From Malacoraja senta (lineage: Eukaryota), in the NCBI GenBank assembly GCA_038087875.1, contig CM075978.1, positions 181,536,001 to 181,600,000 on the forward strand: 64,000 bases of DNA. The letters run 5' to 3'. The translations under genes were made by a program, and so were the position numbers. The number at the start of each line of letters is the position of its first letter. Position 1 is the first letter of the stretch. Shown in pieces: positions 29,437-55,551 of this stretch. The notes under the pieces were generated by a model. That model worked only from the letters and a program-made list of their open reading frames with translations, was not told where the DNA came from and ran no database searches.

Positions 29437-31333
29437 TAACATTGACCATCTCTTTGTCTCCCCCGATGCTAATAGACCCGCTGCATTCTTCCAGCAGTTT
29501 ATTTTTTGCTCCGTATTCTAGCAGCTGCAGGCTCTTGAGTCACCAGGCCTTGATCTACACTGATGTGTACCAGGCACGGCAAGGCCTGGCTCACACACCA
29601 GGGAACCGGGAACAGGCCTGAAGTGGAAGCCTCATCCGAGGCTTGTCTCCTGCTCGACTCCAAAGGCAGGGGAACTGGTAAGGATGGTAGAGGGAGTTGG
29701 CAGCGGACGCTGGACAAAGGCCTGATGTCAAGATGGTGGCAGACGGAGAAGAGGATCGGGAAGTGAGCTGAGGGCTCACCTCCTGCGCTCTTGGAGGCAC
29801 AAAAGGATCTATTGGTGTAATCTGTTGTTCTCCAACATCCAGACTGTAGTCTGGTCCACAATTGCTTATTATCCCTCACCAATGCCCACCTTACGTCAAC
29901 TGTCTCTTTTGGCTGCTTTCTGTTTTTCTCTCTTGTTTCTCAGTGTCACAGCCAGCTGCAATGCCCTCCCCTAATATCCCTTCAACTGAATAGCCTTCTG
30001 TTATAAAATGCCACTTTAAGACATTTAAGAGTCAACCATATTGCAAATGGATCCAGGGTTACAACTAGATCAGAGCAGGCAAAGGAGTAACTATACACAG
30101 ATTGAGCATTCCCTCAAGACAATTAGTGACCGGATGGGTTTTAATGACAGCCTGGTGGTTTTATGATCATTATTAATAGTATTAGTTGATTATTCCAAAT
30201 TATTTAAGTAACTATATTGTATTAGTGCCCTCTGACATCCTGCCCGTCCATACCATTTCTGTTGCTTATTCCTGAAGTTTGCAATTTGCAGCCCATACTT
30301 TTTAATTCCTATTTTGAGTTTGGGCGATCTTTCCCTCTCGTTTCCCTTTCTCCTGACTTTGTCTGAAGAAGGGTCTCGACCCGAAACATCACTTATTCCT
30401 TTTCTCCAGAGGTGCTGTCTGACCCGGTGAGTTACTCCAGCTTTTTGTGTCGTGCTTCTGTTTTGTTCTCAAGCAAGTATGTCTATTATGGTCCTCCCTT
30501 GAGTTTATATTAAGTTTAAAGCAGTTATTTGATTTTACATTTCACATTTACAGTCTATTTTTATTTTGTGATGAATCTTGGCAATGCACATAATTAAAGA
30601 GTAATTGATACATGCTGGCAACAGGTGAAAGTGGTTAAGATAATATTTTGGTGAACACTTTGGAGTTGGTCATATCTTTTGCATTTTAGCTGGAAGCTCT
30701 TAAAATACATGTTGTTGGAAATGTTGCAGAATAGTGGTAAATATTCATGGATTAACTTGACGGAAAACAGTGCAAAACGAAGCAAAAAATGCTCCAGCAC
30801 AATAAAGACAGCAACATTTCTCCCCAAGACATGGACAAAGTTTCTATGAACTTTAACTTACTTAGACAGGTTTGGCCAAAAAGGGATATAACTTAGTACT
30901 ATCTGTGTTGGTGAGGTTTTCTGAGAATTACTAGCTGCAAGCAACCATTCTGTACAAAAGGTCTAATTTTAATAGGAGATGGCAGGATGCTGGCAAATGG
31001 TGGGATCAATAGAGAAGCGTTGCAAAAAACAGCTGGGGATTGTGACTTTTGTGCAATTATGCCTACAGAAATAGGCAGAAACAGACTGGAATGTGTTATT
31101 ACACACTACAGGGTAGAAGAAAGATTGTTTTGAGAACTAATCTGAATTTATGGAAATCAGATTAAGTATATCATGTGGCAGAAAGCTTGGAGGTTCAATT
31201 TAAGGTAATTTTTTGTGTCCACAGGACAGAACGTGGGTACGATACATTAACTCGGAGAGATATCAGAGGATGACAGAAAAAAACCTGTAAACTAAAAAAT
31301 ACCAAGGATATCAGAGGGGAACAGGAGAGAATT

Positions 31334-31463
31334 GTCTGAAGAAGGGTCTCGACCCGAAACGTCACCCATTCCTTCGCTCCAGAGATGCTGCCTGTCCCGC
31401 TGAGTTACTCCAGCATTTTGTGTCTACCTTCAATTTAAACCAGTATCTGCAGTTCTTTCCTAC
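31334..31463 (+). mobile_element. 130-bp Penelope-terminus insertion with a minimal hammerhead motif
   Basis: CTGAAGA-A-GGGT CTCG ACCC-GAAAC-GTC at 31336-31363; TSD ACAGGAG(A/G)GAATT 31321-31333 / 31464-31476. Confidence 0.85.
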
Positions 31464-33246
31464 ACAGGAGGGAATTATTCCCTGTTTATGCTAAAACATG
31501 AGCAATGAGCAGATAAAAAGCAGGCATATGCAAAGAAATGCTATGGAATAGCATAATCTATACATAAGCAGACAGAGTAATTGATGATGAATGAGGAACA
31601 ATGTATTTTGATATCAGTGTGGTTTGGTGCTTTTGGTTTGGATAATGAGGAGTGTGTTTCACCTGGAGTTGCTCTTGAGCCCAATATATTCTAATTCCTT
31701 TTCACTTACAAAGAAAGCAACAACAGATTCTACACTTGCAAAAGTGAAATCACGAATCTATGATTGCAGCTTATGGTGGCTTGCTTTCACGTTAGAGGTC
31801 AGGTACAACTGTTGGTTTATTGAGGTGACTACAGATGCAAGTTGGAGTGAGTTTTGGCTGGCCTGGCTTTATAACCTCTGCTGGGCGATAAGGTACAGTA
31901 TGTTTCAGTTTGGGACATTATAATGATGCAATTATAGAACACCATGTGCTGGTATCAAGTTGGAGCCCCGTGAGTCGATGGAGCCTGGGTCGACAGAGCC
32001 TGCGGCTGGGGCCTGGGTCAGTGCCATGGAGGCGTCAGGAGAGGACCCGGCGGTGAGGTCGGTCAGGCGGTCGATGAGGACGCCAACCGACGAACGAGAA
32101 CGGACCACATGGGAGTGAGGACGCTGCTTGCCAGGGGGAGGAACAAAGGAGGACCCGGCATGGGGGGACTGCCGTGAAGGAGGGGGGAGAACAATGGGGA
32201 CCCGGTGTGCGGGGACAGCTGCGACTCTTGGTTCTGGACTCCAACATCGGGAACATTTTTCATGCATCTAGCCTGTGCAATCCCTTAATAATTTTATATG
32301 TTTCTATAAAATTAGGAATAGGAATACTTTATTGTCACATGTGACGAGGCGCAGTGAAATTCTTTGCTTGCATACCCAATGTATACAAATAGCAGCCACC
32401 AACCGCGCTGACAAAGTTACCAAGCACGCCGGCTCCTCCTTGAGGCATAGACAGAATAGACAACCAGACCCTTTCCCAGGGTGGAAATGTCAAATACTAG
32501 AGGGCGTAGCTTTAAGGTGAAATGAGCAAAGTTTAAAGATATGTGAAATAAGGTTTTTATTGAGGGTGGTGGAGCATGCTGCCAGGGGTGGTGGAGTAAA
32601 TACGATAATGGCATTTAAGAGGCTTCTTGATAGGCACATAGATATACAGGGAATGGAGGGATAGAGATCACAATATTGAGGGTGAGATCAGAAACCTACA
32701 AAACTTTTTTTTTGCTTCAAGTAATCACATATCTTTTTTATTTAAATCACTGATCTATTTTATTTCCCGTTTACAAGTACAATCAGAATTTTCTGTTAAC
32801 AAATGGCAGCTATCGCCCGAACTCACAACCGATACCTCTTCTACATGCTGCTGTTGGGAGGCTAGTCAGTGCCAATAAAGTATTGTTTTCATAGCAACCA
32901 TACAGGTTCAGTAGGAAATGACCGGGACATCACATAATTGACCAGTGACTGCCCAGCCTTAATCAATTCAGGGTTATTTTATACTTTCCAAGGCAAATTG
33001 TGCAAGGTTGCAATATTTAGAGTTGTGCACATTGCATCGAGTCAGTGATGTTTATCATTATTTCCTTGGTGAAAGTATCAGGAAATAAAAATGAACAGTG
33101 CTTATAAAACAATGTCTCTGTGAGGATCATTCAATTTCCAAATGGTACCATGGCATGGTGTATGTTTTGCTATTTGTTTAATTGTGAGTGATTTGATCAT
33201 CCCTGAGACTTTCCACGTGAGATGGTTGTAGAGACATAGATGGTTG

Positions 33247-34934
33247 GAAGACATAAATAATCTGCCGGAAATAGCAGGGGACCGCGGGTCAAAGGAGATG
33301 GAGGAACTGAGTGAAATCCAGGTTAGTCGGGAAGTGGTGTTGGGTAAATTGAATGGATTAAAGGCCGATAAATCACCAGGGCCAGATAGGCTGCATCCCA
33401 GAGTACTTAAGGAAGTAGCCCCAGAAATAGTGGATGCATTAGTGATAATTTTTCAAAACTCCTTAGATTCTGGAGTAGTTCCTGAGGATTGGAGGGTAGC
33501 TAAAGTAACCCCCCTTTTTAAAAAGGGAGGGAGAGAGAAAATAGGAAATTACAGACCAGTTAGTCTAACATCGGTAGTGGGGAAACTGCTAGAGTCAGTT
33601 ATTAAAGATGGGATAGCAGCACATTTGGAAAGTGGTGAAATCATTGGACAAAGTCAGCATGGATTTACGAAAGGTAAATCATGTCTGACGAATCTTATAG
33701 AATTTTTCGAGGATGTAACTAGTAGAGTGGATAGGGAAGAACCAGTGGATGTGTTGTATCTGGACTTTCAGAAGGCTTTCGACAAGATCCCACATAAGAG
33801 ATTAGTATACAAACTTAAAGCACACGGTATTGGGGGTTCAGTATTGATGTGGATAGAGAACTGGCTGGCAAACAGGAAGCAAAGAGTAGGAGTAAACGGG
33901 TCCTTTTCACAATGGCAGGCAGTGACTAGTGGGGTACCGCAAGGCTCAGTGCTGGGACCCCAGCTATATACAATTTATATTAATGAGCTGGATGAGGGAA
34001 TTGAAGGCAACATCTCCAAGTTTGCGGATGACACTAAGCTGGGGGGCAGTGTTAGCTGTGAGGAGGATGCTAGGAGACTGGAAGGTGACTTGGATAGGCT
34101 GGGTGAGTGGGCAAATGTTTGGCAGATGCAGTATAATGTGGATAAATGTGAGGTTATCCACTTTGGTGGCAAAAACAGGAAAGCAGACTATTATCTAAAT
34201 GGTGGCTGATTAGGAAAAGGGGAGATGCAGCGAGACCTGGGTGTCATGGTACACCAGTCATTGAAAGTAGGCATGCAGGTGCAGCAGGCAGTGAAGAAAG
34301 CGAATGGTATGTTAGCTTTCATAGCAAAAGGATTTGAGTATAGGAGCAGGGAGGTTCTACTGCATTTGTACAGGGTCTTGGTGAGACCACACCTGGAGCA
34401 TTGCGTACAGTTTTGGTCTCCAAATCTGAGGAAGGACATTATAGCCATAGAGGGAGTGCAGAGAAGGTTCACCAGACTGATTCCTGGGATGTCAGGACTT
34501 TCATATGAAGAAAGACTGGATAGACTTGGTCTATACTCGCTAGCATTTAGGAGAGGGGATCTTATAGAAACGTACAAAATTCTTATGGGGTTGGACAGGC
34601 TACATGCAGGAAGATTGTTCCCGGTGTTGGGGAAGTCCAGGACAAGGGGTCACAGCTTAAGGATAAGGGGGAAATCCTTTAAGACCGAGATGAGAAAAAA
34701 CTTTTTCACACAGAGAGTGGTGAATCTCTGGAACTCTCTGCCACAGAGGGTAGTTGAGGCCAGTTCATTGGCTATATTTAAGAGGGAGTTCGATGTGGCC
34801 CTTGTGGCTAAAGGGATCAGGGGGTATGGAGAGAGGGCAGGTACGGGATACTGAGTTGGATGATCAGCCATGATCATATTGAATGGCTCGAAGGGCCGAA
34901 TGGCCTACTCCTGCACCTATTTTCTATGTATCTG
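33247..34934 (+). mobile_element. Young 5'-truncated CR1 LINE with nearly intact RT
   Basis: 321-aa and 209-aa ORFs (KSPGPD, YLDFQKAFD, GVPQGSVLGP, KFADD) in the same frame, separated by one TGA at 34207. Confidence 0.96.
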
Positions 34935-36619
34935 TTTGAAGAACAATTCCCATTTGAAAACATCATCTGTCCATTCCCTCCATGGACGCTGGCTGGCCTG
35001 CTGAGTTCCTCCAGCGCTTTGTGCTTTGCTCAAGATCCTTTCATCTGCAGTTTCCTGTGTCTGACTTTCTTTCTTTGTCTACTTTCACCTATCACCCACT
35101 TGCCTATGATAGACATAAAATCTGAAGTAACTCAGCGGGTCAGGCAGCATCTCTGGAGAAAATGAATAGTTGATGTTTTGGGTCAGGATCCTTCTTCAGA
35201 CCCAAAACGTCACCTATCCATTATCTCCGGGGATGCTGGCAGACCCGCTGAGTTTCAAGCATTCCAACATTTTGTGTGTATCTTTGGTATAAATCAGCAT
35301 CTGCGGTTCCCACCTGCCTGTGTCTGCCAACTCCATTCCACTCCTTTCACCCACCTAGATCCATCTTTCCATTGTCCTCTACCCCTCTTGGTCCACCTAT
35401 CACCTACTCATCCCGTTTCACCCCTCCCGCTCTCCTTCTCCTCATGATACTGGCTATCCCCCCTCTCCATTATCAGTCCTGAGGCAGAGTCTTAACCCAA
35501 ATGTCGAAAGTTTCTACCCCCACCCCCCCAACCAACCCACCCACTCAGTTCCTATAACGTTTTCTGTGCCCTAGATCTGCAATTCCAACATTGGCAGTCC
35601 TTGTATCTCAAGATCACCAGATGTGTTTATAAAGAGTGCAGGGTAAAACTGATCATTTAGCATCGAATTGTTTGAAATACTATGGTTGGACATTCATTTA
35701 CTTGTTGATCTGGCCTGTGAATGAGAGGTTCAGAGTGCAGGATCGACGTGGGAGCTTGTAGGCTTGAAGTGAATGTTAGCGGGCATTACTTTTTTTGGCA
35801 TTTAGGATTTTCTGTTTTTTTCCCCTTATCTTGCCAGCATAAATCTAGCCTGTGAGGCGTGTCCCACCCATCTTACCCTTAACAACTCATTGCACAGACC
35901 GAAGAAGTTGAATGTGCTGATAACTGACCCCATTATGGCATTTCGACTCATCATGGACACTCCCTCAGTTCCATACACGCTTCCCCCACTTCTATCTAAA
36001 ACAAACACGAAACTCACTATTTCCCAGTTATGACCAAAGTTGAGTGTTTCTCATTCCACAGAAACTACCTGGCCTGTTGAGTTTTACCAGCATTTTCTGT
36101 TTTTGTTTCTTGTGTTTTCTTTAAGCAGTGCAATTGCCAATATAGAGTTGAAGATGTTGGCCTTTGTTTGAAAATTTTAATTTACCATGAAAGCAGCTCT
36201 TGACTAATAAAATTAGGCCAATTTAAGGAACTGTGAGCATGATACTTTTTATCCACAAAATGAATATACATTAAGGAAGAGCTGGAGAATGTTTCAAATA
36301 TATAATTTCTTCAAAGTTGTCTGATAATTGGGAATAGAAAGGTGGTGAAGCAGAAGCATAATATATTGGAAGCATATTGTGAAGGTTGGGGTAAAAGATA
36401 ACAGGGCTCTGGTTGGGTACGAATCCAACAGTTGTGAAGAAAACACTGGTTGGGTACGAATCCAACACTTGTGAAGAACGAGAATTATTAGAGATATAAA
36501 AATGCATTGCAAAGGAAAAACAAATTATTTCCATTTAATTTTCACTTACAGAAAGCCAATCGGATTAGCAAAAATAGTTTTGTGTAGGAGTTCTTAGAAA
36601 GTATTTGGGATAGTCTCCT

Positions 36620-36945
36620 GAAGTTGAGTTGAGTTTAGTTTATTGTCACGAGTTTCCGAGGTACAGTGAAAAGCTTTTGTTGCGTGCTAACCAGTCAACG
36701 AAAAGACAATACTTGATTACAATCGAGCCATTCGCAGTGTTCGGTTACATGATAAAGGGAATAATGTGAATGATGTTTGGTGCAAGATAAAGCCAGTAAA
36801 GTCCGATCAAAGCATAGTTAAAGTAAGAAATTTTGCGGTAGGAGTAGATATTTAAAAGTGTGGAGCGATTATAACTTGTGATCGCAAATGCACTTCTGTG
36901 ATTAGCACATAAATAGTCGACTGGGTTGGGCGCCATCTTGGAAGT
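36620..36945 (-). mobile_element. Short bipartite non-autonomous element (CAAGATGGCGCC head, Rex1-type tail)
   Basis: rc head CTTCCAAGATGGCGCC at ~36930-36945; tail GTGACAATAAACTAAACTCAACTCAAC. Confidence 0.55.
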
Positions 36946-37972
36946 AACACATATTTGAATCAAATATGGAACAAGCTACCTAATGTGTCATGAGACAGTG
37001 TGAGTTAGCAATATCATATTAAACGATCCTCAAGGGAGAAGATAAGTTTATATTCTGTTCAAGACGAACCCACTATCATCAGAAACTAGAGCTCTTAACT
37101 TAAACAACGGCGATTACAAAGATGTGACAGAGAATTAGCCAATGTAGATTGAGAAATGAAAGTTAAAAAACCTCAATAGCTAAAGATTTTGTTGCAACAA
37201 TCAGTAATATGTTCCATTTAGAAATAAAAACTACATGAAAAGTCAAACATCCATGATTAACCAAATAAATTAAAGCTAATATTGGATTAAAACAAAACAT
37301 GTTAAATGTCCGCCAAGCTTCACAGCCGCGTATCTGTGGCTTCTTAAAATTGTCTCCACTCCTTCTCTTTTAAAGGACTTACCGTATACTGTGCTTGAGC
37401 CGTCTTTTTACAGTGCCAACGCAGTGTGTGTGTGTATCACCTTGGCTTTGCATCGTGTGAATTTTTTAGACAGGGCAAGTGGGGTGAGCGCTTCGACCCG
37501 AAACGTCACCAACTCCTTTTCTCCATAGATGCTGCCTCACCCGCTGAGTTTCTCCAGCATTTTTTGTCTACTTTCGATTTTTACAGCATCTGCAGTTCCT
37601 TCTTAAACAAAATGTCTCTAAACAATAATCAGCTTATCAGGGAACCTCCTTGCCTAAGGTCATCTGTTGCCAGCCCTGATTTATCCTGCTTTTATTAGTT
37701 TCCAGTTTATTTCCCGCTCTCTCTACTACAATTAGGCTCAAGAGGGATCTCGATCCAAAATGTCACTTATGTATTTTCTCCAGAGATGCTGTCTGATCCG
37801 CTGAGTTACTCCAGCAATTTGTGTCTATCTTAGGTTTCTTAGGTGTGGAGGCATGAACAATGTATTGGGGGAATAAACAAATGGGAAAGGCATGAAACAA
37901 ATATTTTTATCTTAACTGTACAATAAAAATGCCAGAAACAGAGGGGAACCAAAACTTAAAACACAATAAAGA

Positions 37973-38261
37973 GTTTTAGTTTTTCGTTTTAGAGATACCG
38001 CTTGGAAGCAGGCCCTTCAGCCCACCGAGTCTGCGCCGACCAGCGACCTGGTTACATTAGTTCTATCCTACACACAAAGGATAATTTACAGAAGCCAATT
38101 AACCTACAGACCTGTACGTCTTTGGAGTGTGGGAGGAAACTGGAGCATTTGGAGAAAACCTAAGCGGTCACAGGGAGACAGACAACACCCGTAGTTAGGA
38201 TTGAACCTGGGTCTCTGGCACTGGAGGGTAGCAACTCTACCGCTGCACCACTGTGCCGCCC
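37973..38261 (-). mobile_element. V-SINE-like SINE inside a degraded CR1 (~37040-39200)
   Basis: rc GGGCGGCACAGTGGTGCAGCGGTAGAG head. Confidence 0.85.
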
Positions 38262-39734
38262 TAGAGTTGCAGCTTTATTTCCTGCATTCTAAAAGAGATG
38301 GCTACACAAGTAGTGGATGGACTAGTGATAATCTTCCTACATTTCCTAAATCGTGAACTGCCTTACATGGAACTGCCTTATATATTGCATCACTTTCAGG
38401 AATGTGGTTTATGTTGACATCAATTGTTGGCAAAACATTCTCATGGATATGGTGACAAGATACTTAGAAATCATAACATGATAAGGCAGAGACAATGTAG
38501 TTTTATGAAAGGAAAATCATCTGGTTAATCTATGAGAGCTTTTCAGAATGTAATTAGCAGGGTTGGAGGAGTTCACAGCAACATGAATAAAAATTGATTA
38601 AAGGACAGAAAACAAAGGAATAAACAAGGTATTGTTCTTGGGGTGCCGCAGGGATTAGTATTTGTTTACTTCATAGTTAACATTAATTGTTAAAAAAAGT
38701 AGAATGCAACATATCCAGGTTCGCCTATGATTCAGAGGAGGGTGGCAAAAGTGAACTGTGATGAGGATACAAAGATTTATCAGAGGGATATAAACAGGTG
38801 AAGTAAGTGGGCACAGAGCTGGCAGATGGCATATAATGAAGTTATTTATTTTGAGAAGGAAAAGCAGAAATACCAGGAACTGTTGCTACTGGTTTATTAA
38901 AAATATATACATAGTGCTGGAATAACTCAGCGGGTCAGGCAGCATCTCTGGAGTACGCGGATAGTTGACGTTTCAGGTCAGGACCTTTCTTCAGACTGAA
39001 GGATAAATAGAATTATTAAAGTGATGAGATATTGCAAATGATGACAATCTTGCTGCACTCATTCATGAAAAGCAGAAAGTAGATAAGCAGAAGCAGCACA
39101 CAATTAACAGGTTAATAGAATGCAGGGATTTATTGCAAGGGGTTTGGAATACAAAAATAATGAATATTTAGAGAACAGTACACAGTTTTGAGCTCCATTC
39201 TTGAGGAAGGATTCCCAACCCACTTTCTCCTGCCTGTGTCTACCCCCCCCCCCCCCCTGCCCAGTGCACACCCATTTCTCTATCTCTCACTAATCCAGTC
39301 ACCGAGCTACTTTCCCTTCTTCCATACACTAATTTCCCATCCTGGAGTCCCTCATTTCCCTTTTATCCACCCCCCCTTTTTCCATTACCCCCCTTCCACC
39401 CATATCCCTCTGGATTTATTCCACCCATCTGCCAGTCAACCCCCCCACCCCCCCCCCACCACCTGTATCCACCTATCACTTGCAAAGCCTTTGTGCTGGC
39501 TCACCTCTCTTTTCCAACTTTCTTCCCCCTACTGGTATGAAGAAGGGATCTAACCAGAAAAATTATTTGCCAATTCCCTCGACAGATGTTGCCTGAACTG
39601 CTGAGTTCTTCCGGTGCTTTGTGTTTTGCGAAGGATATACTGTACACGTACCTAGTCTGGGGTTTACATGGTGTAGATTTACTGGGCTACTGCTGGGATG
39701 AACACGTTTTCCAATGAGGAGAGATTGTGTAAGA

Positions 39735-42840: not shown

Positions 42841-42974
42841 TGGCTGCAAGAGGAGCAGGGCAGGGAACTGAATATTCAGGCCTATCGAAAAGACAGGTGG
42901 GCAGAGAGGGTGGGGTAGCTCTGTTGGTAAGGAAAGAAATTCAGTCCCTTGCGAGGGTTGGCATAGAATCTAAC

Positions 42975-45900
42975 ATGAGTTCTCCAACATGAGTTCAGAG
43001 AGTTGGGAAGAAGACTGAAAAGCCGGACTTCTAGGGTGGTTATCTCTGGATTGCTTCCAGTACCTCGTGCGAGTGAGGACAGGAACAGGGAGATAGGGGA
43101 TCTGAATGTGTGGCTGAGGGGCGGGAGCAGGGAGCAAGGATTTAGATTTATAGACCACTGGGATCTCTTCTGGGGTAGGGGTGACCTGTACAAAAGGGAC
43201 GGGTTAAACCTTAACTGGAGGGGAGCCGACATTCTGGCAGGCAGGTTTGCTAGGGCTACACTTGTGGGTTTAAACTAAATAGTGGGGGGGGGGAGGGATT
43301 GATAAATTGGGAGTATAAAGATGGAGTTGAAGGGGAAGTGACTACAGGAAAAATTACAAAAGATTCTCAAATTAATGGGAAGGAAAGCTCGAGAAAGGAC
43401 AACAGAGTAAGGTCAGGACCAATTGCGAGCGGTGCGAGGGGGGAAGTGAATACGGAGGTCAAAGTACTGTATATGAATGTGCAAAGTATAAGGAATAAAG
43501 TGGACAAGCTTGAGGCTCAGTTTGAAACTGGCAAGTATGATGTTGTGGGAATTACTGAGACATGGCTGCAAGAGGGCCAGGGCTGGGAACTGAATATTCA
43601 AGGGTATACCTCCTATCGAAAAGACAGACAGGTGGGCAGAGGGGGTGGGGTTGCCCTGTTGGTGAGGAATGAAATTCAGTCCCTTGCAAGGGGTGACATT
43701 GAAACAGGAGATGTGGAGTTAGTATGGATAGAACTAAGGAATTGTAAGGGTAAAAAGACCCTAATGGGACTAATCTACAGGCCCCCAAACAGTAGCCTGG
43801 ACATAGGGCGCAAGTTGAATCAGGAGTTAAAATTGGCATGTAGCAAAAGTAATGCTGTGGTTGTTATGGGAGATTTCAACATGCAAGTAGACTGGGAAAA
43901 TCAGGTTGGTACTGGACCCCAAAAAAGGGACTTTGTAGAGTGCCTTCGTGATGGATTTTTAGAACAGCTTGTATTGGAGCCTACCAGGGAGAAGGCAATT
44001 CTGGATTTAGTGTTATGTGATGAACCGGATTTGATAAAGGACCTCGAGGGTTAATGAGCCATTAGGAGGCAGTGACCATAACATGGTCAGCTTTAATCTA
44101 CAATTGGAGAGGGGGAAGGGTAGATCGGAGGTGTCAGTGTTGCAGTTGAATAAAGGGGACTATGGGGCCATGAGGGAGGAGCTGGCCAAAGTTGACTGGA
44201 AAGATACACTAACAGGGATGACAGTGGAACAAAAATGGCAGGTGTTTCTAGGAATAATGCAGAAGGTGCAGGATCAGTTCATTCCTAGGAGGAAGAAAGA
44301 TTCCAAGGGGAGAAAGGGACGACCATGGCTGACAAGGGACGTCAGGGACAGTATAAAAATTAAAGTGAAGAAGTACAACGTAGCAAAGATGAGCAAAGAT
44401 CATCTTTGCTACGTTGTACTTCTTCACTTTAAGAGGATTAGGTAATGTTTAAAGAACAACAGAAGATAACCAAAAAGACAATACGGGGAGAAAAGATGAG
44501 GTACAAAGGTAAGCTAGCCAGGAATATAAAGCAGGATAGTAAAAGCTTCTTTAGGTATGTGAAGATGAAAAAAATAGTTAAGACCAAAGTTGGACCCTTG
44601 AAGACCGAAAAAGGTGAATTTATTATGGGGAACAAGGAAATGGCAGATGAGTTGAACAGGTACTTTGGATCTGTCTTCACTAAGGAGGACACAAACAATC
44701 TTCCTGATATAGTAGTGGCCAGAGGATCTGGGGTGACAGAGGAACTGAAGGAAATCCACATTAGGCAGGAAATGGTGTTGGATAGACTGATGGGACTGAA
44801 GGCTGATAAATCCCCAGGGCCTGATGGTCTGCATCCCAGGGTACTTAAGGAAGTGGCTCTAGAAATCGTGGATGCATTGGTGATAATTTTCCAATGTTCT
44901 ATAGACTCAGGATCAGTTCCTGTGGATTGGAGGGTAGCTGAAGTTATCCCACTTTTTAAGAAAGGAGGGAGAGAGCAAACGGGGAATTATGGACCAGTTA
45001 GCCGGACATCGGTGGAGGGGAAGATGCTGGAGTCAATTATAAAAGATGATAGCGGCACATTTGGATAGCAGTAACAGGATCGGTCCAAGTCAGCATGGAT
45101 TTACTATGGGGAAATCATGCTTGACTAATCTGGGATTTTTTTAGGTTGTATCTAGGAAAATGGACAAGGGAGAGCCAGTGGATGTAGTGTTCCTGGACTT
45201 TCAGAAAGCCTTTGATAAGGTCCTACATAGGAGATTAGTGGGAAAAATTAGAGCACATGGTATTGGATGTAGGGTACTGACATGGATAGAAAATTGGTTG
45301 GTAGACAGGAAACAAAGTGTAGGGATTAACGGGTCCCTTTCAGAATGACAGGCAGTGACTAGTGTGGTACCGCAAGGCTCGGTGCTGGGACCGCAGCTAT
45401 TTACAATATACATTAATGATTTGATGAAGGGATTCAAAGTAACATTAGCAAATTAGCAGATGACACAAAGCTGGGTGGCAGTGTGAACTGTGAGGAGGAT
45501 ACTATGAGGATGCAGGGTGCCTCGGAATGGTTGGGTGAGTGGGCAGATGCATGGCAGATGCAGTATTTTGTGGATAAATGTGAGGTTATCCACTTTGGTG
45601 GCAAGAACAGGAAGCAGATTATTATCTGAATGGTGTCAAGTTAGGAAAAGGGGAAGTACAGTGAGATCTGGGTGTCCTTGTTCATCAGTCACTGAAAGTA
45701 AGCTTGCAGGTGCAGCAGGCAGTGATGAAAGCTAATGGCATTTTGGGCTTCATAACAAGAGGAGTTCAGTATAGGAGCAAAGAGGTCCTTATGGAGTTGT
45801 ACAGGGCCCTAGTGAGACCACACCTGGTGTATTGTGTGCAGTTTTGGTCTCCAAATTAGAGGAAGGACATTCTTGCTATTGAGGGAATGCAGCGTAGGTT

Positions 45901-46376: not shown

Positions 46377-46510
46377 ATATAATTTACAACAGATTGCCAT
46401 GGTGACTGAGAGTTCCGCCACTGGTTGCTGATGGCCTGAATCGTTTGGGTTGTTCAGAGGAGCCTTCACTTCCGGACCTTCAGCACTCACTGCCTGTGGA
46501 GCAAATGCTG

Positions 46511-46890
46511 CCTTACAACCCGGCGGTATGAATATTGATTTCTCTAACTTCAAGTAACCCTTGCATCCCCTCTCTCTCTCTCTCTCTCTTCATCCCTCCC
46601 TGTGGTCCTGCTGAGTTTCACTGTTTGTATCACTCGTTATCACCTTCCCCACAGCCAACAATTGACTATTGTGGGCTCCACCTCTCCTTGATCATCGTTG
46701 CTGGCGTTGATTTGTCCTTTTGCATACATTTCATTCATTTGTTCTTTGTACCTTTTCATATCTCTCGTTTCCCACTCCCCCTGTCTCTCTCAGGCTGAAG
46801 AAGGGTCTCTATCCTAAACGTCACCCATTTCTTGTCTCCAGAGATGCAGCCCGTCCCGCCGAGTTACTCCAGCATTTTGCGCCTCCCTTC
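46511..46890 (+). mobile_element. Penelope 3' fragment in the RFWD3 proximal promoter
   Basis: LQPGGMNIDFSNFK* remnant; degenerate hammerhead 46795-46822; TSD GGAGCAAATGC(T/C)G 46498-46510 / 46891-46903. Confidence 0.85.
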
Positions 46891-46904
46891 GGAGCAAATG
46901 CCGT

Positions 46905-47400
46905 TGATTGACGAACCGATCCCACGTCTGGCTGGGCAGTGAGCGCTGATTGGCAAGTAGAGCCGCACGCTTATTGGCTTTATGTGAACATTACGAGGGG
47001 CAGCGAGCGGCGCTGTGAATCAGTGGCGCGGAGTTTTCAGTTAGAAGCTGAGAAGGAAGAGGGTGAATTATAGGCCGCGGGCCCGTGGCTTACGGGTGAG
47101 TGCCAAGCTTGGACAATAATATCGGAGGGAAGGGGACAGGGAAGGGGAAGGGGAAGGGGAAGGGTGGGGGGGGGGAAATCGCCTTCTCGTCGATACGTAG
47201 AGTTGCGGCAGAGGCCTCTGAAGCCGCGACCTGGTGTTGCAGCGAGTCTGAGCCTAGAGGCCGCCTCTCCCGGTGGCCAAGGCCTTGGTCGAGCGCCATG
47301 TCTGTCGGTTGGGTCAGACGGCGGGCTCGGGCCGTGCTCGAATGCCGACGGAATCACGAAGCAAGCGAGGCCTCTCAGCGACGGTTTGGTGCACACTAAA
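46905..47400 (+). promoter_or_regulatory. RFWD3: RFWD3 promoter / CpG island with non-coding exon 1 (donor after 47095)
   Basis: CpG-rich non-repeat DNA; inverted CCAAT boxes ATTGG at 46949-46953 and 46973-46977; E2F-like TGGCGCGG ~47024; donor CGG|gtgagt at 47095/47096. Confidence 0.75.
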
Positions 47401-48121
47401 CTAACAGGACTTCAAACCGTGGCACTTCTGTCTCCCCCTCTCCTAGGCTATGTACTTTCCTCCCCTTATCTCTGCTGCATTTTCTTCTTCGGTTCGGTTC
47501 CCTTTCACTTTGTCTATTTTAGTTTATCTTATGTTTATGTTCTTTCTCTCTGATCCCTAATCCCTCACATCCAACGAAAAGTGTTCGATCTTAAGTGTTA
47601 CCTCTGTTTACTCTGTTCATAAATGCTGACCTGCTGCGTGTTTTCAGCATTTTCTGTTTTTATTTCTTATTTCCAGCACCTGCAGTTTTTTTTCTTTCTC
47701 TTCCCAGCTTCTTTCATGCTTGACACAAAAGACTGCAGATGCTGAATCTGGAGCAAAATAAAGAGAGCTGTTGGAGGAACTCCGCTGCTCAGGCAAGGTA
47801 TTTGCAGGGAAATGGACAGTTAACTTTTTGTTTTGAGACCTCAATATGTCCCCCCATTTCTTTCTTTCTATGCAGTCTAGCAATCTTACATCCCCACTCC
47901 ATGGTTCCATTGTATCACTTTTCCTGTTGCATATTGTTCTCTTCTCCCTGTCCCTTGGAACTCCTGCTGTTGAGCTCTTATTGGGATGCTGTTTTTGGTC
48001 CTATGCTCATTTCAACATTTGTGATTTCCCATATTAAGAGTATTATTTTAAAAAAAATAACAGGAGTATTCTGTGTTTATTTCCCCTTGCCACTGACTAA
48101 CTATTTCTGTTTTTCCTAGGA

Positions 48122-48471
48122 ATGGCTCAAGAAGTAATCGATGTGGATATGCAGCTTGAGGAGGAAGGTGTCTTATCGCAGTTAAGACTCCATGACCCAG
48201 CTTCAAGGTCAACAGCACCCAGCCCTGATGACGTCCCTGGTGCCATGGAGTCGGGAGAGCTGCCATTCGCAGCAGTAGCTCCAAGTGCTCAGCGTGGTGG
48301 TCTGGAAGCTGCATTACTAACTGAGGAACTTCAGAGACTGCAAGGAGCATTGAGGACAGTAGCCCAGCATTTTTCACTTGGGCAAAGACCTGGTCGTCAA
48401 CGTAGACAGTTAAGGAGGCATAATCGTCGCCAATCAAGTGCAAGTACTTCTCAGAGATCAGTTTCATCCAG
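48122..48471 (+). CDS. RFWD3: RFWD3 first coding exon, disordered N-terminus MAQEVIDVDMQLEEE...SVSS(R)
   Basis: Branch point CTGACTAAC + ttcctag acceptor (exon starts 48120), ATG 48122, donor AG|gtaat; MAxE start resembles vertebrate RFWD3; splices in frame through to the RING exon. Confidence 0.85.
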
Positions 48472-48651
48472 GTAATCTGTAGCTGGGAAGTGACAAAGAA
48501 TTGAGAATCTAATGGCTATAATATTAATTTTTTTAACATTAAGAAACATTAACCATATTTGTTTTGATACTTTAGATGAGTTTCTGCCAGTGTTTTTCAA
48601 TCATGTTCTCAGATCTGGTAGGACTGATGTCCTATAAAGGTATTTGGTTAG

Positions 48652-48744
48652 CAAAAAATGCTGGAGAAGTGGGGTAAGGCAGGGGTGAGGCAGCATCTCT
48701 GGAGAGAAGGAATTGGTTATTTGGGTTGAGACCCTTCTTCAGAC
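48652..48744 (-). mobile_element. 93-bp Penelope-terminus insertion
   Basis: TSD TATTTGGTTAG 48641-48651 / 48745-48755; element 5' end is GTCTGAAGA. Confidence 0.8.
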
Positions 48745-49370
48745 TATTTGGTTAGGTGAATTTATGATTTCTGAGAATTTGCTGCTGTCCATGTATGGAT
48801 ATTTGACAAGATCTCAAGGCTACCAAATGATTTAAATTTTTTCTTGGTTTTGCTGCTTAGAGATTTTCTTTATTGCCTTGCTTTGTCACGCAGCTTAACC
48901 CTGCCACCCTCAAACAATCTAGAAACACTCCAATAATCAAGCTCCGGCCAAGTGTGTTTCTTAGAAAACATAGAAAAATAAGTGCAGGAGTAGGCCATTT
49001 GGCTTTTCGAGCCATCACTGCCATTCAATATGATCATTGGAATTCATATGATAATCCACTGGTTATCTTATTCTGCAAGCAACTTTTATTGACTGGTGCT
49101 ATGAATACATTTTGCTAAGATGCTCCTCTAACTTCATTAGGGAGCTTCAATTTCCTGAAGGCACATCCTGATTGAAGTAAAGTACAACTCAGAACTGATG
49201 GCACTGTCCAAGTGTCATGGTGACAAATCTTTCTGGTGGCTGGAGGGTTGAAGAAAAATTCTTCCAGATTGAATTTTGATTTGATATGTGTGTTTGTTTG
49301 ACATTTACCTTCACGATTCTGGTATCTTATGACTTGGAATAAAATTGATATGCAATTCTTTTAATTATAG

Positions 49371-49573
49371 GTCTGGAGCTTTAGATAACTACTTTCGGGT
49401 TAATAGGCAACAGCGCACAGTAACAGATGGACTTGTGCAATATGGAGCAGATGAGGTGAGCAGTGAAGATTCAAGCACTGATCAGAGCACTGATCTCAGT
49501 GAATCAGAGGAGAGTGGTAGCAGCACAGAAATAGAAGATGACTATGGAAGAAATGAGTCTGTGGCAATCTCTG
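49371..49573 (+). CDS. RFWD3: RFWD3 exon 3: SGALDNYFRVNRQQ...acidic Ser-rich tract
   Basis: ttatag|G..G|gtgag, 203 nt, phase 2->1, open frame. Confidence 0.87.
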
Positions 49574-50762
49574 GTGAGTTGAGGAGCTTTGTGTCATTGT
49601 TAATGTCAAACTGTTTCACTTATAGCAGGGTAAATCTAATGAATAATGCATACATTTTCAGTGGGGATGGAACTTTTATCCATTGAATTTTATTCCATGT
49701 TTGCATTTAATTGCCAGCCTTTCACCAGTATGAACATTTCTTCCGACTAAATAAAATTGGCTGAAGACTGGCTTCTGTAATTGGGGAAGGAAAAAGCCAA
49801 GTTGGATTCATCTATTTGGGTATACTGTTGTAGGTGATTGTAAAAGCTTAAGCCTCTTACATTTTCTTGTTTGTCTCCAACTCAATGAGGATGATGATTT
49901 AAGTGTCCAACGGGTCATTCACAACTGCAGCACTTTCAAATGATCCAGTTGTTAATGGAATCATGTAGTTTTAGCTACAGCACATAATTTCGAATCAGCA
50001 TTTATGTGTTCCTGTGCTTTGCACTGCCAGGTTGGCATCCAACTTTTGATATTCCTGATGCTGCATCTGGCCTGCAACCTTCATTAACTCTAGATTGTGC
50101 CCTTTGCTTGATGGCAATGATGGTGCAAGGTTCGTTTAATCACTAATTAATGGTGATATACAGTCTACTGTTGTATCCTCATCATGGCACTGTTTTGATT
50201 TCCTGGATCTGTTCTGCATCATCTACATTCATTATGGTGGTGGTGTGACCCAACAGTGTCCTCGCAGAAGACAAGCTGTAGAAGGACTATGCAGAATTCA
50301 GTTTGTTTTCCAATACGTTAGTGTTTATTGGTAAATCTATTCAAATTAATTTGTTTGCTTTTAAGGCAAGCTGAGGATGCTGAAATTGTGATAAACATGC
50401 ATTGTGCTTGTTTGGTTTCTAAAACCCAATGCTCGTGTTTAAATTTGATTTGCTATTTATCCAACTTTAATGTACATTTAAGCAATCAGCTATGTCTGTT
50501 TCTCCACTCTTCAATTTTGTATGTAAATGTAACACCCTTGTTTTTCCCCATGACTCTTTATTCAGCAACACCGTCTGTCTGACATTATACTAACCCTGCA
50601 CTTTTTGTTTAAGTAATTATCTTGTTCCACCCATTTCTCCTTTTAAAATAAAAATACATCTTTCATTAGTTCCAAATGTATCTGTGAATGGCGCTATTAC
50701 ATTTTCCTATATTACTTGAACTGATCTACTTTCACAAAGTTAAAGATGAGCAAAAGGTTCTT

Positions 50763-50960
50763 AAGATAGCTACAAAGTGCTGAAGTAACTGAGCAGGTCA
50801 GGCAGCATCTCTGGAGAAAAAGGATGGGTGATGTGTCGGGTTCAGACCCGAAATATTGCCCATCCTTTTTCTCCAGAGATGCCGCCTGACCTGCTCAGTT
50901 ACTCCAGCACTTTGTAGCTATCTTTGGTATAAACCAGTATGTGCAATTCCTTATTTCTTC
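50763..50960. mobile_element. Fold-back Penelope-terminus insertion (79-bp arms, 4-nt loop)
   Basis: Arms 50763-50841 / 50846-50924; TSD AGCAAAAGG(T/C)TCTT 50749-50762 / 50961-50974. Confidence 0.88.
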
Positions 50961-51529
50961 AGCAAAAGGCTCTTGTTTGATTGTGGTGTTTAAACCAGAT
51001 TAGAATTTTTTTTTTTAATTAATTCTCTGTCCTTTACCTAGTTTATTTGGTGGATTGCTTTCAAATTGGACCTTGCCAGAATTTTTTTTTCTTGTAATAA
51101 CCAACAAGATGGCAGCTTGTTATAAAAATTCAACAGATTCACTGCTCTCATCAATGTGTAGCTGCAGTCCACAGTGGATATGAAGAGGCTGATCAAGTAA
51201 CTCTGTTATACCAGTGCAAACTAGGATGGGCAACAAATACCTGGTTTGTCTGCAATTCCCACATCCTTGACTTGAATTCTTTACAATGGAGAGAATTTTT
51301 GAGGCACAAAAGTTCACTTCCATTTGTGTGAAAGTAATTGTAGCTCACATAGGTGTTCGATGACTGTGCTAAAATGTTCAGAAGAAAAATAACTAACCGT
51401 ATATTTTAATGGTTGGGATTTGTTGCAGTCGGATTTATTTCTGTGCCCGCTCATAACACAATCTGTTAAGTGTCTTTTTCTTTTACATGCAAAGAATTGC
51501 TTTAAATCTAATTCCCTCTGCCTTTGCAG

Positions 51530-51615
51530 CACCAGCTAACACTGCGGCAGTGGCGAACCCTATACCAGCACAGGGTATTGAGAATGAGGATTTGCAGTCA
51601 TTACATCAAGAGCAG
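51530..51615 (+). CDS. RFWD3: RFWD3 exon 4: (A)PANTAAVANPIPAQGIENEDLQSLHQEQ
   Basis: ctttgcag|CA..CAG|gtcag, 86 nt, phase 1->0, bridges exon 3 to exon 5. Confidence 0.75.
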
Positions 51616-52909
51616 GTCAGACATTTCTGCTAATTTTGCTGACAGATTTAAAGATGATACCTCTAACTTGTAGGATTAGTGTAAATGAAAGGTTAATGAT
51701 TGGCATGGAATTGGTGGGCTGAATGGGTGCTTTCTGTGCTGTATCGCTCTGAATAACCAATTGGAACGTAAAATCAATGGGGCAAAGAAATGAGATTTCT
51801 TTACGTTAAATAAAATTAAAGTAGACACTGGCCATATTCTACATTGGGTGGGAAAAATACAGGATTGAATAGCCTCCTGTTCCTGTAGATTGAGTTATTT
51901 AGTTGGTCTGCTTGTGATCTGTGACATTGATCTTGATCATATTAATAATTTTTCACTGAAGATAGACACAAAAAGCTGGAGTAAGTGGGACAGGCACCAT
52001 TTCTGGAGAGAAGGATTGAGTGACGTTTCGGGTTGAGACACTTCAGACTAATTAGGGATAAGGGAAACGAGATCTAGACGATGATGTAGAGAGAAAGAAC
52101 AATTAATTGAAGATATGCAAAAAAGTTACGGTGATAAAGGAAACAGGCCATTGTTAGCTGTTTGTTGGGTGTAAACGAGAAGCTGATGGACCTTGGGTGG
52201 GGAGGGATAGATAGAGGGAATGCCGGGGTATCCCTCCCGCACCCAAGTCTCTTTTCATATCCACTTTCCTGAGATATTGTTCATTCCACAGACATATCAG
52301 CATTTGGGTTTACTATTAAGTTTAATTCGCATATATAGTTATTGCAATAACCCTTTGCTAATAGCTAGTTTGACCAGAGGTTTATTACAGTAAATCTTGA
52401 ATTTGCTATCAATGTTTTTTTTATCACAGTCCAATTTTAGAAACAAACCACTTGAATTATGTGCATTTAAGGATGTAGATGTTTATTTAATTTGGTGCAG
52501 ATTAAACTGGATGGCAGAAAAGCAGTTAACAAAATTTCCCTTCTATAGGTCATTCCCACTTACCCTAATACAGGAGTTTATACTTGAGTATCTGCAGTAG
52601 GAATTGCATAACTTGTAAAGATGTTAAAAGTTTTGAATTTATGAATTAGTTGCATTTTATTCCTCACTGCTATATCCCCTGTACTTCTGCCCCTTTCCAT
52701 TAACTCCTTCTTTCAATTTACTTGCAAGCACAAAAACCCCATGCCTCTTCAACCACTCTAGAGTTAGCTGGTTAATATACAGTAAACCTTTGCTATTATG
52801 GATCTCTGTATAACGGATTTTGGTTATAGTAAACTGAGGCATTCATTATTGTTGGTTGTTGGCAGGCGGCGGGTAGAGAGCTGGCAGTAAAACACTCTTG
52901 AAGAGCATT

Positions 52910-53013
52910 CAGGTAGACAAAAATGCTGGAGAAACTCAGCGGGTGAGGCAGCATCTGTGGAGCGAAGGAAATAGGCAATGTTTCGGGTCGAAACCCTTCT
53001 TCAGACTGATTAC
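52910..53013 (-). mobile_element. ~104-bp Penelope-terminus insertion inside a Tigger-like fragment
   Basis: TSD AGAGCATT 52902-52909 / 53014-53021. Confidence 0.8.
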
Positions 53014-53324
53014 AGAGCATTGCATTGGGCACAGGTTTGCAGCGGCTGCCACAAAGTGATGTCCCGAGGTGTTGGATGCAGACGCAAAGTGCGCCATCCC
53101 GATATTGCTTTTCTTCCCAACTAGCCTTGGGTTAAACTAGTTAATATTTATCCTCTTCACTCGCTTATAGTGGACATGGAGGTAGGAGGTTGAAGGATAT
53201 CAATATAGGATTTTTTGCCACTACAAATGGATTTTTTGTACTTTCATGTACCTTACACTTTGGAAATAAAATGGGTCTGTAAAGAGTATTCACCGTGTCT
53301 ATCTCATGTAATATTTTACCCTAG

Positions 53325-53549
53325 GAAAGCCTGGCCTTGCATTCAGAAGTATTAAATGTGAAAAAAGATGACCCAAGTCCACAGGCTACCAGTATGGTCT
53401 CTGATGATGAAGGAGATACTTGCTCCATCTGTTTTGAGCCATGGACGAATGCAGGAGAGCATCGTCTTGCTGCTCTGCGATGTGGCCATCTTTTTGGGTT
53501 TACCTGCATTGATCGATGGCTGAGGGGACAAGGAGGAAAATGTCCACAG
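53325..53549 (+). CDS. RFWD3: RFWD3 exon 5, RING finger [43 protein letters not shown]
   Basis: ccctag|GAA..CAG|gtaat, 225 nt; diagnostic RFWD3 RING sequence. Confidence 0.97.
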
Positions 53550-54379
53550 GTAATTCTGCAGCAAGATATTGGGGATGAAAAGCAAAAATTTGCATCTTAA
53601 GGTTTCCAAGGGAGTACAATGGGATTATGTTCTGATTTTTTTTTTTTTTTTTTTAAACAAAGGAAATAATTTTGTTTGGTGGTTATGTTAGATTCTCAGT
53701 GACTTTCACCTGGATGGTAAAAATGGATCCATGGAGCGTTGGACTTTATGAACTGAGATGCAAAACTGCCTATCTTAGTTTTTGTCTATCTGAAGGAGTG
53801 GCCGTTCATGCAATGAGTTTACTCAAAGAAGATTGTTTGGGATATCAAGATCATTGAGTAACGTGAATAGAGCCAAAAAGAAGAATTGGGGTGAAGGTTC
53901 AACCATAATCCCACTGAATGACAAAACAAGCATAAGGGCCTTGTGATTTCCTCTCCTTTCTGTTCTTAACTATGTTACATCATACTTTGTTAAAATCTTG
54001 ATCTATAGATTTTGAGAGGGAGAGATATGAATGTATGGAGCAATCATTGATAAATGAAATGTAGCCGGAAGGTCTCTTGTGATCATGCCAGATTGGGCCA
54101 CGTCTCCAGCTTAACTGGTGCTCTACTTTATTCAGGGTCTTGCACCTTTTTAAATCAAAATGAGAATGTAATTTGAAGAAAATCAAAATTGGAGTTGCAA
54201 AACTGCCAGATGAATCATAAATTTCACATGGGTTATTGGGAAAGGATATTTAAAGATTGTGAGGGAAGACATTTTTGATTGTTTCCCTGTAAAGCCAAAC
54301 TTGGTTTGCAAAGAAAATTGAGACTAATTTTAATTACTAAACCACAACCATGCTAAAAGACTCTTTTTGGATTTTGCAG

Positions 54380-54471
54380 TGTAATAAGAAAGCTAAGAGA
54401 TCAGATGTGGTGTTACTCTATGCCCGAGTACTGACGGCTGTGGATACCAGTGAACAGGAGCGATTAAAGAG
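54380..54471 (+). CDS. RFWD3: RFWD3 exon 6: [30 protein letters not shown](S)
   Basis: tttgcag|TGT..AG|gtata, 92 nt; completes the RING. Confidence 0.96.
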
Positions 54472-55205
54472 GTATACACCAGTTGTGGGGAAATTTATTT
54501 TTGTTCCAAATGCAGAGACCAAAGGCTGCCTTTCCTCCACACCAGGGCCACCAAGATGCAGTGGGGGGATTGACAAGTGCAGTAATTAAGCAAAATGACC
54601 TAGTGTCTAAATAAAATGCAAATTGAGCCTGGCTGTAATACTTACCCGAGTAGATCAGTATAGAGGCTGAATTCAACTTTTATTGTAACACGGTGAGAAT
54701 TTGATAAAATATGTACACTAAAAAAAAAATGTTAAAAGTACCATACCTACTGGATTGGGTTAAAGGTCCAACCTTTGGCTCGAGCTCCACAGCAGTGTCA
54801 TCAATCCTTAACTGCTCTTTGAAATTCCTCAGTTACCACTCCCTTTTCAGGTACTTGTGTGGTTCAGATACTGTTTATTGCATTTATATTTTTTCCATCT
54901 GTCTGCAGCCCCTATATTTGTATTAGTTATTATGTGTCATCAAAGAGGGCCAAGTGCAAGATGACCTTGAGCAATGATTCCCGCACTTTGGTGAATATTA
55001 ATCAAAATACACTTAAAGAAAATATAATAACAGGACTCCTTAATTTGATCCCTTTTGATAACATATTTCTCTTTTTCTATCTTTCCTTCTGAGAGAAGAA
55101 CTTACCTTGTTATTGTAGGACATTTTGAATGAATGACTGGAATATCACATTTCATCTCCTGAAAGTTGAAGCTTTAAACTCTGCTCCAGGGACTTGTGCA
55201 TGCAA

Positions 55206-55311
55206 CGCACCCCCCAAAAGTCTGAAGAAGGGTTTCGGCCCGAAACGTTGCCTATTTCCTTCGCTCCATAGATGCTGCTGCACCCGCTGAGTTTCTCCAG
55301 CATTTTTGTTT
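55206..55311 (+). mobile_element. 106-bp Penelope-terminus insertion with an intact hammerhead motif
   Basis: Perfect 14-bp TSD ACTTGTGCATGCAA 55192-55205 / 55312-55325; CTGAAGA-A-GGGT TTCG GCCC-GAAAC-GTT. Confidence 0.9.
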
Positions 55312-55551
55312 ACTTGTGCATGCAATCCAGCCAATGTTGAAGGATTTTTTTTTCATGATTCTCTAATTTGCATGAAAGCTGCATTATCCAATTGCAGATA
55401 GATGCAAAAGATCCCCAATATTTGCACTGCTCTTTACGCTTTAGCTAACATTGCCAACTCCGGATAATTTCGTTATTTTCAAATTTGTGGTGATTGGCTA
55501 CTGTATTTTCCACTTTAGTGACACATTTTGAGTAATTCATTGGCTATAAAG

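Follow-up and report, generated by a model that had tools for sequence, protein, structure and literature searches.

What fixes the 5′ end of the very short insertions that recur through a 64,000-nt stretch of the Malacoraja senta genome (contig CM075978.1, positions 181,536,001 to 181,600,000; the whole stretch is hereafter called the window)? Each of four such insertions, 93–130 bp long and flanked by its own target-site duplication (TSD), is by its sequence the 3′-terminal module of a Penelope-like element (PLE), that is a minimal type-I hammerhead ribozyme motif followed by a tail of ~65–100 nt. Across the genome, the 5′ ends of such copies gather at the first nucleotide of that motif. We consider it the best explanation, with a probability of roughly 55%, that the short insertions are run-off retrocopies of PLE-tail RNA whose own 5′ end lies at the hammerhead edge.

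Unit positions are counted from the G of GTCTGAAGA (position 1, or G1), the preceding A being A0, and hammerhead cleavage is predicted after position 30. The initial annotation had proposed four insertions with TSDs of 8–14 bp, two of them beginning exactly at GTCTGAAGA; all four were recovered in place and their duplications verified. The first is a 130-bp solo unit of the long-tail form on the + strand (31334–31463), which starts exactly at G1 and lies within a 13-bp TSD with 1 mismatch (31321–31333 / 31464–31476); its top 40 genome matches are 96–98% identical across all 130 bp. The second, a 93-bp solo on the − strand (48652–48744), also has its 5′ end exactly at G1 and its 3′ end within a T-run (11-bp TSD, 48641–48651 / 48745–48755). 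The other two are B-type solos that begin somewhat further upstream: a 104-bp unit (52910–53013, −) whose 5′ end lies 7 nt upstream of G1 (GTAATCA; 8-bp TSD, 52902–52909 / 53014–53021), and a 106-bp unit (55206–55311, +) whose 5′ end lies 14 nt upstream, within C-rich spacer sequence (14-bp TSD, 55192–55205 / 55312–55325). Measured against a null of mismatched pairs (median 6, 95th percentile 8, 99th percentile 10), three of the four TSDs reach or exceed the 99th percentile, the 8-bp one not being significant on its own. Insertion by a TSD-making retro-mechanism, as first proposed, is supported by these duplications.

The unit runs from GTCTGAAGA into a 4-bp helix II capped by CUCG or UUCG, then GAAACGU(C/U), then a tail of ~65 nt that ends near ...TTTT(T)GTGTCTACC; many copies add ~35 nt, ending ...CAGCATCTGCAGTTCC.... 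An Rfam scan of the window returned no hammerhead match at gathering threshold, and a scan of the unit at E ≤ 10 gave spurious matches only; since no Rfam model reached threshold, the motif was checked by descriptor. The type-I order CUGANGA...helix II...GAAA keeps its exact core and spacing in 37 of 115 sampled copies. Among these 37, the extra unpaired nucleotide between A9 and 10.1 is A in 35, H17 is C or U in 36, a palindromic ACGT replaces helix III in 25, and the helix II stem is GGGU/ACCC or GGGU/GCCC, including the G10.1–C11.1 pair. Helix I, read directly from the sequences, is limited to 2 bp (G1–C32, U2–A31). The published descriptors of PLE minimal hammerheads are an extra nucleotide after A9, G10.1–C11.1, a palindromic ACGU in place of helix III and C or U at H17 (PMC4209133), and the primary structure of the unit matches them.

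The parentage of the unit can be read from the long copies, in which it follows ~115 nt past the stop codon of an open reading frame (ORF) with a GIY-YIG domain, across a CT-rich, CACCC-rich spacer. One long PLE 3′ part (62304–63388, −), continuing towards the window end, comprises a GIY-YIG ORF (62522–63388), a CT-rich spacer (62408–62521) and the hammerhead unit (62304–62407). A second long copy (4635–5576, −) has its GIY-YIG ORF at 4875–5576, then the spacer, then the unit at 4635–4731, and an older copy (33244–35023, +) carries a reverse transcriptase (RT) ORF (33244–34209; RVT_1, E = 7e-33) and, after it, a terminal unit that has diverged (34958–35023). As RT or GIY-YIG ORFs stand directly upstream of units in the long copies, the unit is the 3′-terminal module of PLEs, in agreement with the initial annotation. 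Several spacer families have the unit in common and are mutually unalignable; CAG|TCTG is retained in all six of them, and CA directly precedes G1 in all. Many long copies are found in at least one non-B family, that of the CTCCCCTGACTCTCA type (40 matches, 88–90% identity over 216 nt). A recurrent G-rich sequence, AGAATGGGGGGAACA, unlike the pyrimidine spacers, is also met upstream of the unit in the whole-genome list (e.g. C1:142692, C1:1448723 and C1:4323536).

The distribution of 5′ ends was followed by exact-pattern searches of the whole genome, each giving a total count and listing the first 100 matches along the genome, with N positions shown; these matches were classified by eye, and each list of 100 is a sample unbiased for the sequence adjoining its anchor. 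The A-type anchor at positions 1–20 has 42,620 matches in total; among the 100 listed, 54 continue into spacer (≥10–15 nt), 34 are solos starting at −5 to 0 (~14 begin at G1, 11 at A0 and the others at −2 to −4) and 12 carry an inverted or partial-duplication junction at position 1. Its B-type counterpart has 19,758 matches, and the 100 listed divide into 59 with spacer, 26 solos (−7 to 0) and 15 junctions. In these samples, 41–46% of hammerhead-retaining copies start or have a rearrangement junction ≤7 nt upstream of GTCTGAAGA, and the mode of the 5′ ends is exactly at its G or the A just before. Anchors within the unit show what happens on the 3′ side. With positions 23–34 (51,482 matches), 79 of the 100 listed copies are intact to position 1, six end at +2 to +5 and 15 in positions 6–22, half of these 15 being snap-backs in the helix II palindrome; with positions 48–59 (179,110 matches), ~8 of the 100 listed end in positions 25–47, at most two of them near the cleavage site.

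Expressed per 100 copies holding positions 48–59, 5′ ends number roughly 0.35 per nt in positions 25–47, 0.8 in 6–22 and 1.4 in 2–5, rise to 4–5 per nt at −5 to +1 (higher at the mode) and drop to 0.3 per nt at −15 to −8, where ~3–4 of 100 listed copies end. The density at −5 to +1 is 6–30 times that of its flanks, and the random-truncation expectation of no preferred position does not hold. A sample of 264 kb of unselected DNA contains 81 units, of which 30 form 15 head-to-head dimers, 21–25 are edge-starting solos, 13 are long and 10 break off within the unit; ~25 of ~50 solo 5′ ends fall within a 9-nt window (binomial p ~2e-18). From the whole-genome lists, 60 of the 65 ends within 15 nt upstream fall in the proximal half (p ~2e-13). 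Solo starts verified by TSDs (7–18 bp) are at G1 in 4–5 copies, at A0 in two, at −7/−8 in two and at −14 in one. The initial annotation had suggested that 5′ ends cluster at the hammerhead and had set a smooth spread of breakpoints as the contrary outcome: both the whole-genome lists and the 264 kb show a sharp peak, placed at the 5′ edge of the hammerhead (p ~1e-13 to 1e-18).

Spacers differ between subfamilies, so calls based on homology only may shorten copies, and it could be argued that 5′ truncation is smooth and the clustering an artefact of where subfamily homology stops. We hold this to be almost certainly wrong, given that TSDs directly abut position 0/1 and that the peak persists in anchor-conditioned whole-genome samples of two families.

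The side of the hammerhead on which the peak lies bears on the second explanation offered by the initial annotation, a stop imposed on RT by the ribozyme fold. RT moves 3′ to 5′, and a fold-imposed stall would be expected before the hammerhead (~positions 23–33). Ends are scarce there, the peak lies on the far side, beyond the whole motif, and the predicted fold of the unit is no stabler than shuffled sequence (z = 0.21), all of which makes such a stop unlikely. Nor is there a footprint of cleavage: at most two of 100 listed copies start at positions 30–33, with no excess at 30/31, which rules out cleavage-site ends as a major template class. A second ribozyme cutting at position 1 was considered and rejected, there being no P1-type complement to positions 1–6 by eye and no Rfam match to any ribozyme family; moreover, UCA is not an NUH cleavage triplet.

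Immediately 5′ of the edge-starting solos there is an excess of G and a deficit of C (G14, T9, C1; p = 0.003). An extra G from cap copying was discarded as the source, the identical bias being found upstream of copies starting at −3/−4; because those copies show it too, the bias is probably a target-site preference and does not discriminate between mechanisms. At the TSD borders no recognition motif of the endonuclease (EN) was evident in 12 cases, and no CA|GT-like target motif was found.

The same positional data can be cited for an event that takes place once RT has passed the hammerhead, be it drop-off, a programmed template switch or EN resolution, caused by the C/U-rich spacer, by bound proteins or by an RT–RNA anchoring contact like those that define template boundaries in telomerase. 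PLE RTs are sister to TERT, EN-mediated resolution has already been invoked for PLE tails and inverted copies (PMC8557442), and the helix II palindrome provokes snap-back junctions in ~8 of 100 listed copies, a minor site exemplified by the inverted dimer at 50763–50961. However, 54–59% of copies read through into the spacer and ends just past the peak fall back to the low density given above, while neither an unusually stable fold of the unit nor a CA|GT-like motif at the TSD borders accompanies the stop. We regard this alternative as rather unlikely.

If the 5′ end is fixed, the 3′ end is not. In TSD-verified solos 3′ ends are ragged, from position 88 to 140, with modes near 100–105 and 130–140. 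The 35-nt tail is present in ~45% of B-type copies and on one arm only in inverted dimers. Older or short B copies end ...GTGTACC(T) or bear the 35-nt tail; young long B-type copies (96–100% identical; 62304–62313 in the window and ~1500–1760 in loci L001–L030) all end ...GTGTACCAGC, followed by unique flank, and this AGC end may reflect an internal tail deletion or a second priming site at CCAGC.

Two head-to-head inverted dimers lie in the window. In one (50763–50961), two units are joined in the helix II loop, with a 35-nt tail on one arm and a 13-bp TSD (50750–50762 / 50962–50974); in the other (35107–35309), the minus arm extends to position 1 and the plus arm runs from ~position 18. Further examples were seen beyond the window (L032 5139–5333, L033 6481–6666, L034 4234–4417 and L048 7147–7343). 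The junctions of the 15 dimers among the 81 unselected units gather at two places, the helix II loop and position 1. The whole-genome lists contain CTGAAGAAGG|GTCTGAAGAAGG direct duplications, which can be understood since a free complementary DNA (cDNA) end, the complement of G1-U2-C3, would re-anneal at GUC (positions 13–15), and inverted arms beginning at positions 19–22, since the same end would snap back onto GAC (positions 19–21). Both classes of junction are consistent with re-priming by a cDNA whose free end lies at position 1. Ragged 3′ ends, a tail on one arm, 5′ truncation and inverted neighbours are published hallmarks of PLEs; their fixed 5′ end aside, the short copies thus look like any other PLE insertion product.

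The same features bear on whether the short copies might be solo pseudo-LTRs (LTR, long terminal repeat), in which a full insertion had the unit at both ends and lost its body by unequal recombination, leaving a TSD-flanked unit. PLEs do form partial tandems with pseudo-LTRs (PMC8557442), and a solo of this kind would resemble a unit-length copy. Yet among 144 units in 360 kb there is not one with recurrent PLE body sequence behind it, repeats of only ~100 bp recombine poorly, and ragged 3′ ends and a one-arm tail fit direct insertion; a fixed 5′ end of the upstream repeat would still be required. Such an origin appears very improbable to us.

The unit is abundant enough to raise the question of an independent lineage. 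Sixty-one units occur in twenty 10-kb pieces drawn at random from the 1.94-Gb genome, and 20–22 in the window, a density of ~1 per 3.3 kb that corresponds to roughly half a million PLE tail fragments genome-wide, of which about a third start at the first base of the minimal hammerhead; the exact 12-mer at positions 48–59 occurs at least 179,110 times. Near-identical unit 31-mers are also present in sequencing runs with six organism labels from eight studies. A non-autonomous lineage resembling short interspersed nuclear elements (SINEs) or retrozymes would have its own internal promoter and short copies as masters, possibly through circular RNA. It would account for that copy number, for the 40 close relatives of the short copy at 31334 and for the somewhat shorter terminal branches of A-clade short copies relative to long ones, and non-LTR retrozymes have been reported as PLE derivatives (bioRxiv 10.64898/2026.07.22.740005).

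The phylogeny by which the initial annotation would have recognized subfamilies of short copies was built from unit positions 4–92 of 55 units, 23 edge-starting and 32 long, and its resolution is low (90 columns). It requires 13 changes between short and long labels against 16.6 ± 1.8 after shuffling (18 of 500 shuffles as low), a slight clustering due mainly to near-identical long B copies. Every subfamily contains short and long copies, no clade of short copies stands out, and one short solo copy elsewhere in the genome is identical over positions 4–92 to the ORF-bearing copy at 4635–4731. With short and long copies interleaved in this way, the short ones are not a separate SINE or retrozyme lineage. 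The anatomy is no closer to either class. No head-to-tail array was found among the 81 units of the 264 kb, which are inverted pairs, solitary units and occasional neighbours; in place of the ~6-bp helix I and loop–loop contacts of a canonical type-I hammerhead there is a helix I of 2 bp; and no distinct RNA polymerase III (Pol III) head of the SINE kind was found, promoter boxes having been judged by eye only. A run of T4–5 at positions 83–87 lies within the copied region, upstream of the 3′ ends of copies that extend to positions 95–140, which makes Pol III transcription unlikely.

RNA could speak both for such a lineage and for a hammerhead-edge start. Raw oligo-dT (poly(A)-selected) and single-cell RNA reads of a related species were placed on window positions 62200–62900, where depth is ~3,500 over the unit and ~10 over the spacer. 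As to the circular RNAs that the initial annotation had proposed to look for, these poly(A)-selected reads contain no well-supported circular joint: joints that go back are weak (3–16 starts), and the matchable ones are internal duplications also present in DNA. Recurrent joints going back 33–34 (window 62353–62401), from unit position ~40 to ~7, match partial direct duplications of the hammerhead region at the DNA level. Among single-cell reads those antisense to the unit outnumber sense ones 3:1, a bias suggestive of largely passive host transcription, and the RNA signal as a whole tells neither for nor against a germline start site or a short non-polyadenylated RNA. The antisense bias also hints at selection against sense-oriented copies in transcribed regions. 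With interleaving, solitary or inverted copies, the missing head and the RNA evidence taken together, we find an independent lineage improbable; of the initial suggestion of a discrete family mobilised by PLEs, mobilisation by PLEs stands and the separate lineage does not.

The sequence that precedes the unit, a pyrimidine tract followed by CAG, resembles a splice acceptor. Splicing at (Y)nCAG is not supported as the origin of the edge: the related-species reads contain no GT..AG joint removing the spacer, and the DNA lists show no exon-like sequence repeatedly joined at position 2. In the related species, at least a quarter of the reads crossing the hammerhead edge (62408) continue into one shared sequence that is not CT-rich, ...CCGATACCTCTT, perhaps a spacer family peculiar to that species, perhaps an upstream exon that has been fused.

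We return to run-off copying of a discrete RNA. A 5′ end sharp to 1–2 nt combined with a ragged 3′ end is what points to copying right up to the end of a template whose 5′ terminus is fixed. The short insertions would be dead-on-arrival retrocopies of the 3′-terminal module from several co-resident PLE lineages, made by the PLE RT/GIY-YIG machinery through target-primed reverse transcription. The cDNA would begin at variable points of the tail, giving ragged 3′ ends and the optional 35-nt tail, and would run to a discrete template 5′ end at the A/G before UCUGAAGA, giving the sharp end at the first nucleotide of helix I. Where the free cDNA end is not joined to the target, it could re-anneal by GUC/GAC microhomology and produce the small direct duplications and snap-back inverted dimers.

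The anatomy of the units, their TSDs, their PLE parentage, the peak and the mixing with long copies are established by the data; that the 5′ end of the copies is an RNA end we infer from this pattern, and its origin likewise. Most likely, the RNA would arise by transcription initiation at the conserved initiator-like TCA(+1)GTCT. In parental long copies this motif lies beneath the 3′-terminal CACCC/CT-rich spacer, which would serve as a PLE pseudo-LTR promoter. TCAGTCT fits the initiator consensus YYANWYY, of which the Drosophila form is TCAKTY. Initiation at the hammerhead edge is favoured by the conserved TCAGTCT, by the upstream CACCC boxes and by the precedent of Drosophila virilis Penelope described below. 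Alternatively, the RNA end could come from 5′-to-3′ trimming halted at the hammerhead or at the edge of a ribonucleoprotein (RNP); a 5′-to-3′ exonuclease or an RNP footprint would yield the identical DNA pattern and would approach from the correct side.

Several observations weigh against this account. About 80% of edge-starting solos begin at G1 and not at the canonical A(+1), so that a recession of 1 nt is needed; the promoter is proposed from motif resemblance only; molecule starts do not pile up at the hammerhead edge in the oligo-dT and single-cell reads of the related species, a weak negative; and the antisense excess among single-cell reads speaks for mainly passive host transcription. 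We put forward only tentatively, as a possibility below even odds, that a promoter in the 3′-terminal spacer fires at TCA(+1)GTCT, that the hammerhead is the very 5′ end of a discrete RNA in vertebrate PLEs, and that every long copy emits a hammerhead-first transcript, in a genome of which the units fill about 1–2%. Were this true, the hammerhead-first transcript would be the genomic RNA in tandem copies and, in solo copies, a short RNA copied end to end by RT, and the ribozyme would be a 5′-terminal module, serving RNA dimerisation, priming or end protection, and not a processing site for long precursors.

The remaining units of the window complete the picture. Where the initial annotation announced ~20 further full or decayed units, blastn gives 22 unit matches in the window, and the exact hammerhead core pattern has 8 matches against 0 expected. 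One longer copy (305–430, −) retains spacer over ≥37 nt on its upstream side; further units, longer or decayed, lie at 16798–16855 (+), 24221–24350 (−), 30361–30451 (+), 37492–37605 (+, with its 5′ start within helix II), 37734–37831 (+), 38877–38999 (−), 46790–46890 (+) and 51957–52044 (−). A decayed unit with a CTGATGA core (20815–20860, +) is real and visible by eye, and as it fell below the blastn threshold used, the unit counts given are minimum values. The window also contains a fragment of a long interspersed nuclear element (LINE) that has no relation to the PLE family, with an ORF bearing an Exo_endo_phos (APE-type) endonuclease domain at 43299–44054 (+) and ORFs at 44083–45068.

To our knowledge, the role of the PLE hammerhead has been open since 2014, the sole proposal being cleavage of tandem precursors, poorly supported owing to weak activity in vitro. 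Hundreds of thousands of natural retrocopies now provide a record of template ends, with no footprint at the cleavage site and very sharp ends on the motif's first nucleotide. This pattern explains how the commonest short repeat of this genome arose, no new SINE being required, and it amounts to a new regularity within a known kind of element and a concrete handle on PLE hammerhead function; should the 5′ end be only an RT quirk, it would be a modest refinement of the PLE truncation mode.

Solitary minimal hammerheads have a precedent: the majority of motifs in genomes were noted to occur singly and to be "probably related to truncated PLEs" (Cervera & de la Peña 2014, PMC4209133), and their motif architecture and location in PLE terminal repeats match the units described here. 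In the literature searched, we found no report of a fixed truncation point at the first helix I nucleotide, of a quantified peak or of a missing cleavage-site footprint. Metazoan non-LTR retrozymes (Cervera & de la Peña 2020, PMC7229834; Li et al. 2026 preprint) are likewise non-coding, hammerhead-bearing and PLE-related, and "monomer" derivatives have been described. Retrozymes are, however, head-to-tail tandems of 150–450 bp with canonical type-I hammerheads, expressed as circular RNAs (PMC7229834; bioRxiv 10.64898/2026.07.22.740005), whereas the units here are scattered as lone or inverted copies, have a helix I of 2 bp and give no circular-RNA signal in poly(A)-selected reads of the related species.

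The closest parallel for an RNA end near the ribozyme is D. virilis Penelope, whose start site and LINE-like TATA-less initiator promoter lie in the terminal repeat (Schostak 2008, PMC2377424; PMC6765202) and whose intron stops precisely where hammerhead helix I begins (PMC4209133). The likeness extends to a TATA-less initiator in the terminal repeat, a pyrimidine tract and AG abutting helix I, and a hammerhead near the RNA 5′ end; the mapped start in D. virilis precedes the hammerhead by ~120 nt (46 nt once the transcript is spliced), whereas the RNA end proposed here would be at the hammerhead itself. Canonical PLE insertions (Craig et al. 2021, PMC8557442) show heavy 5′ truncation, an adjacent inverted 5′-truncated copy, a 30–40 bp tail at one end and variable TSDs, all of which recur here in miniature, with the difference that the commonest product is 95–135 bp long and has a sharp 5′ end and a ragged 3′ end.

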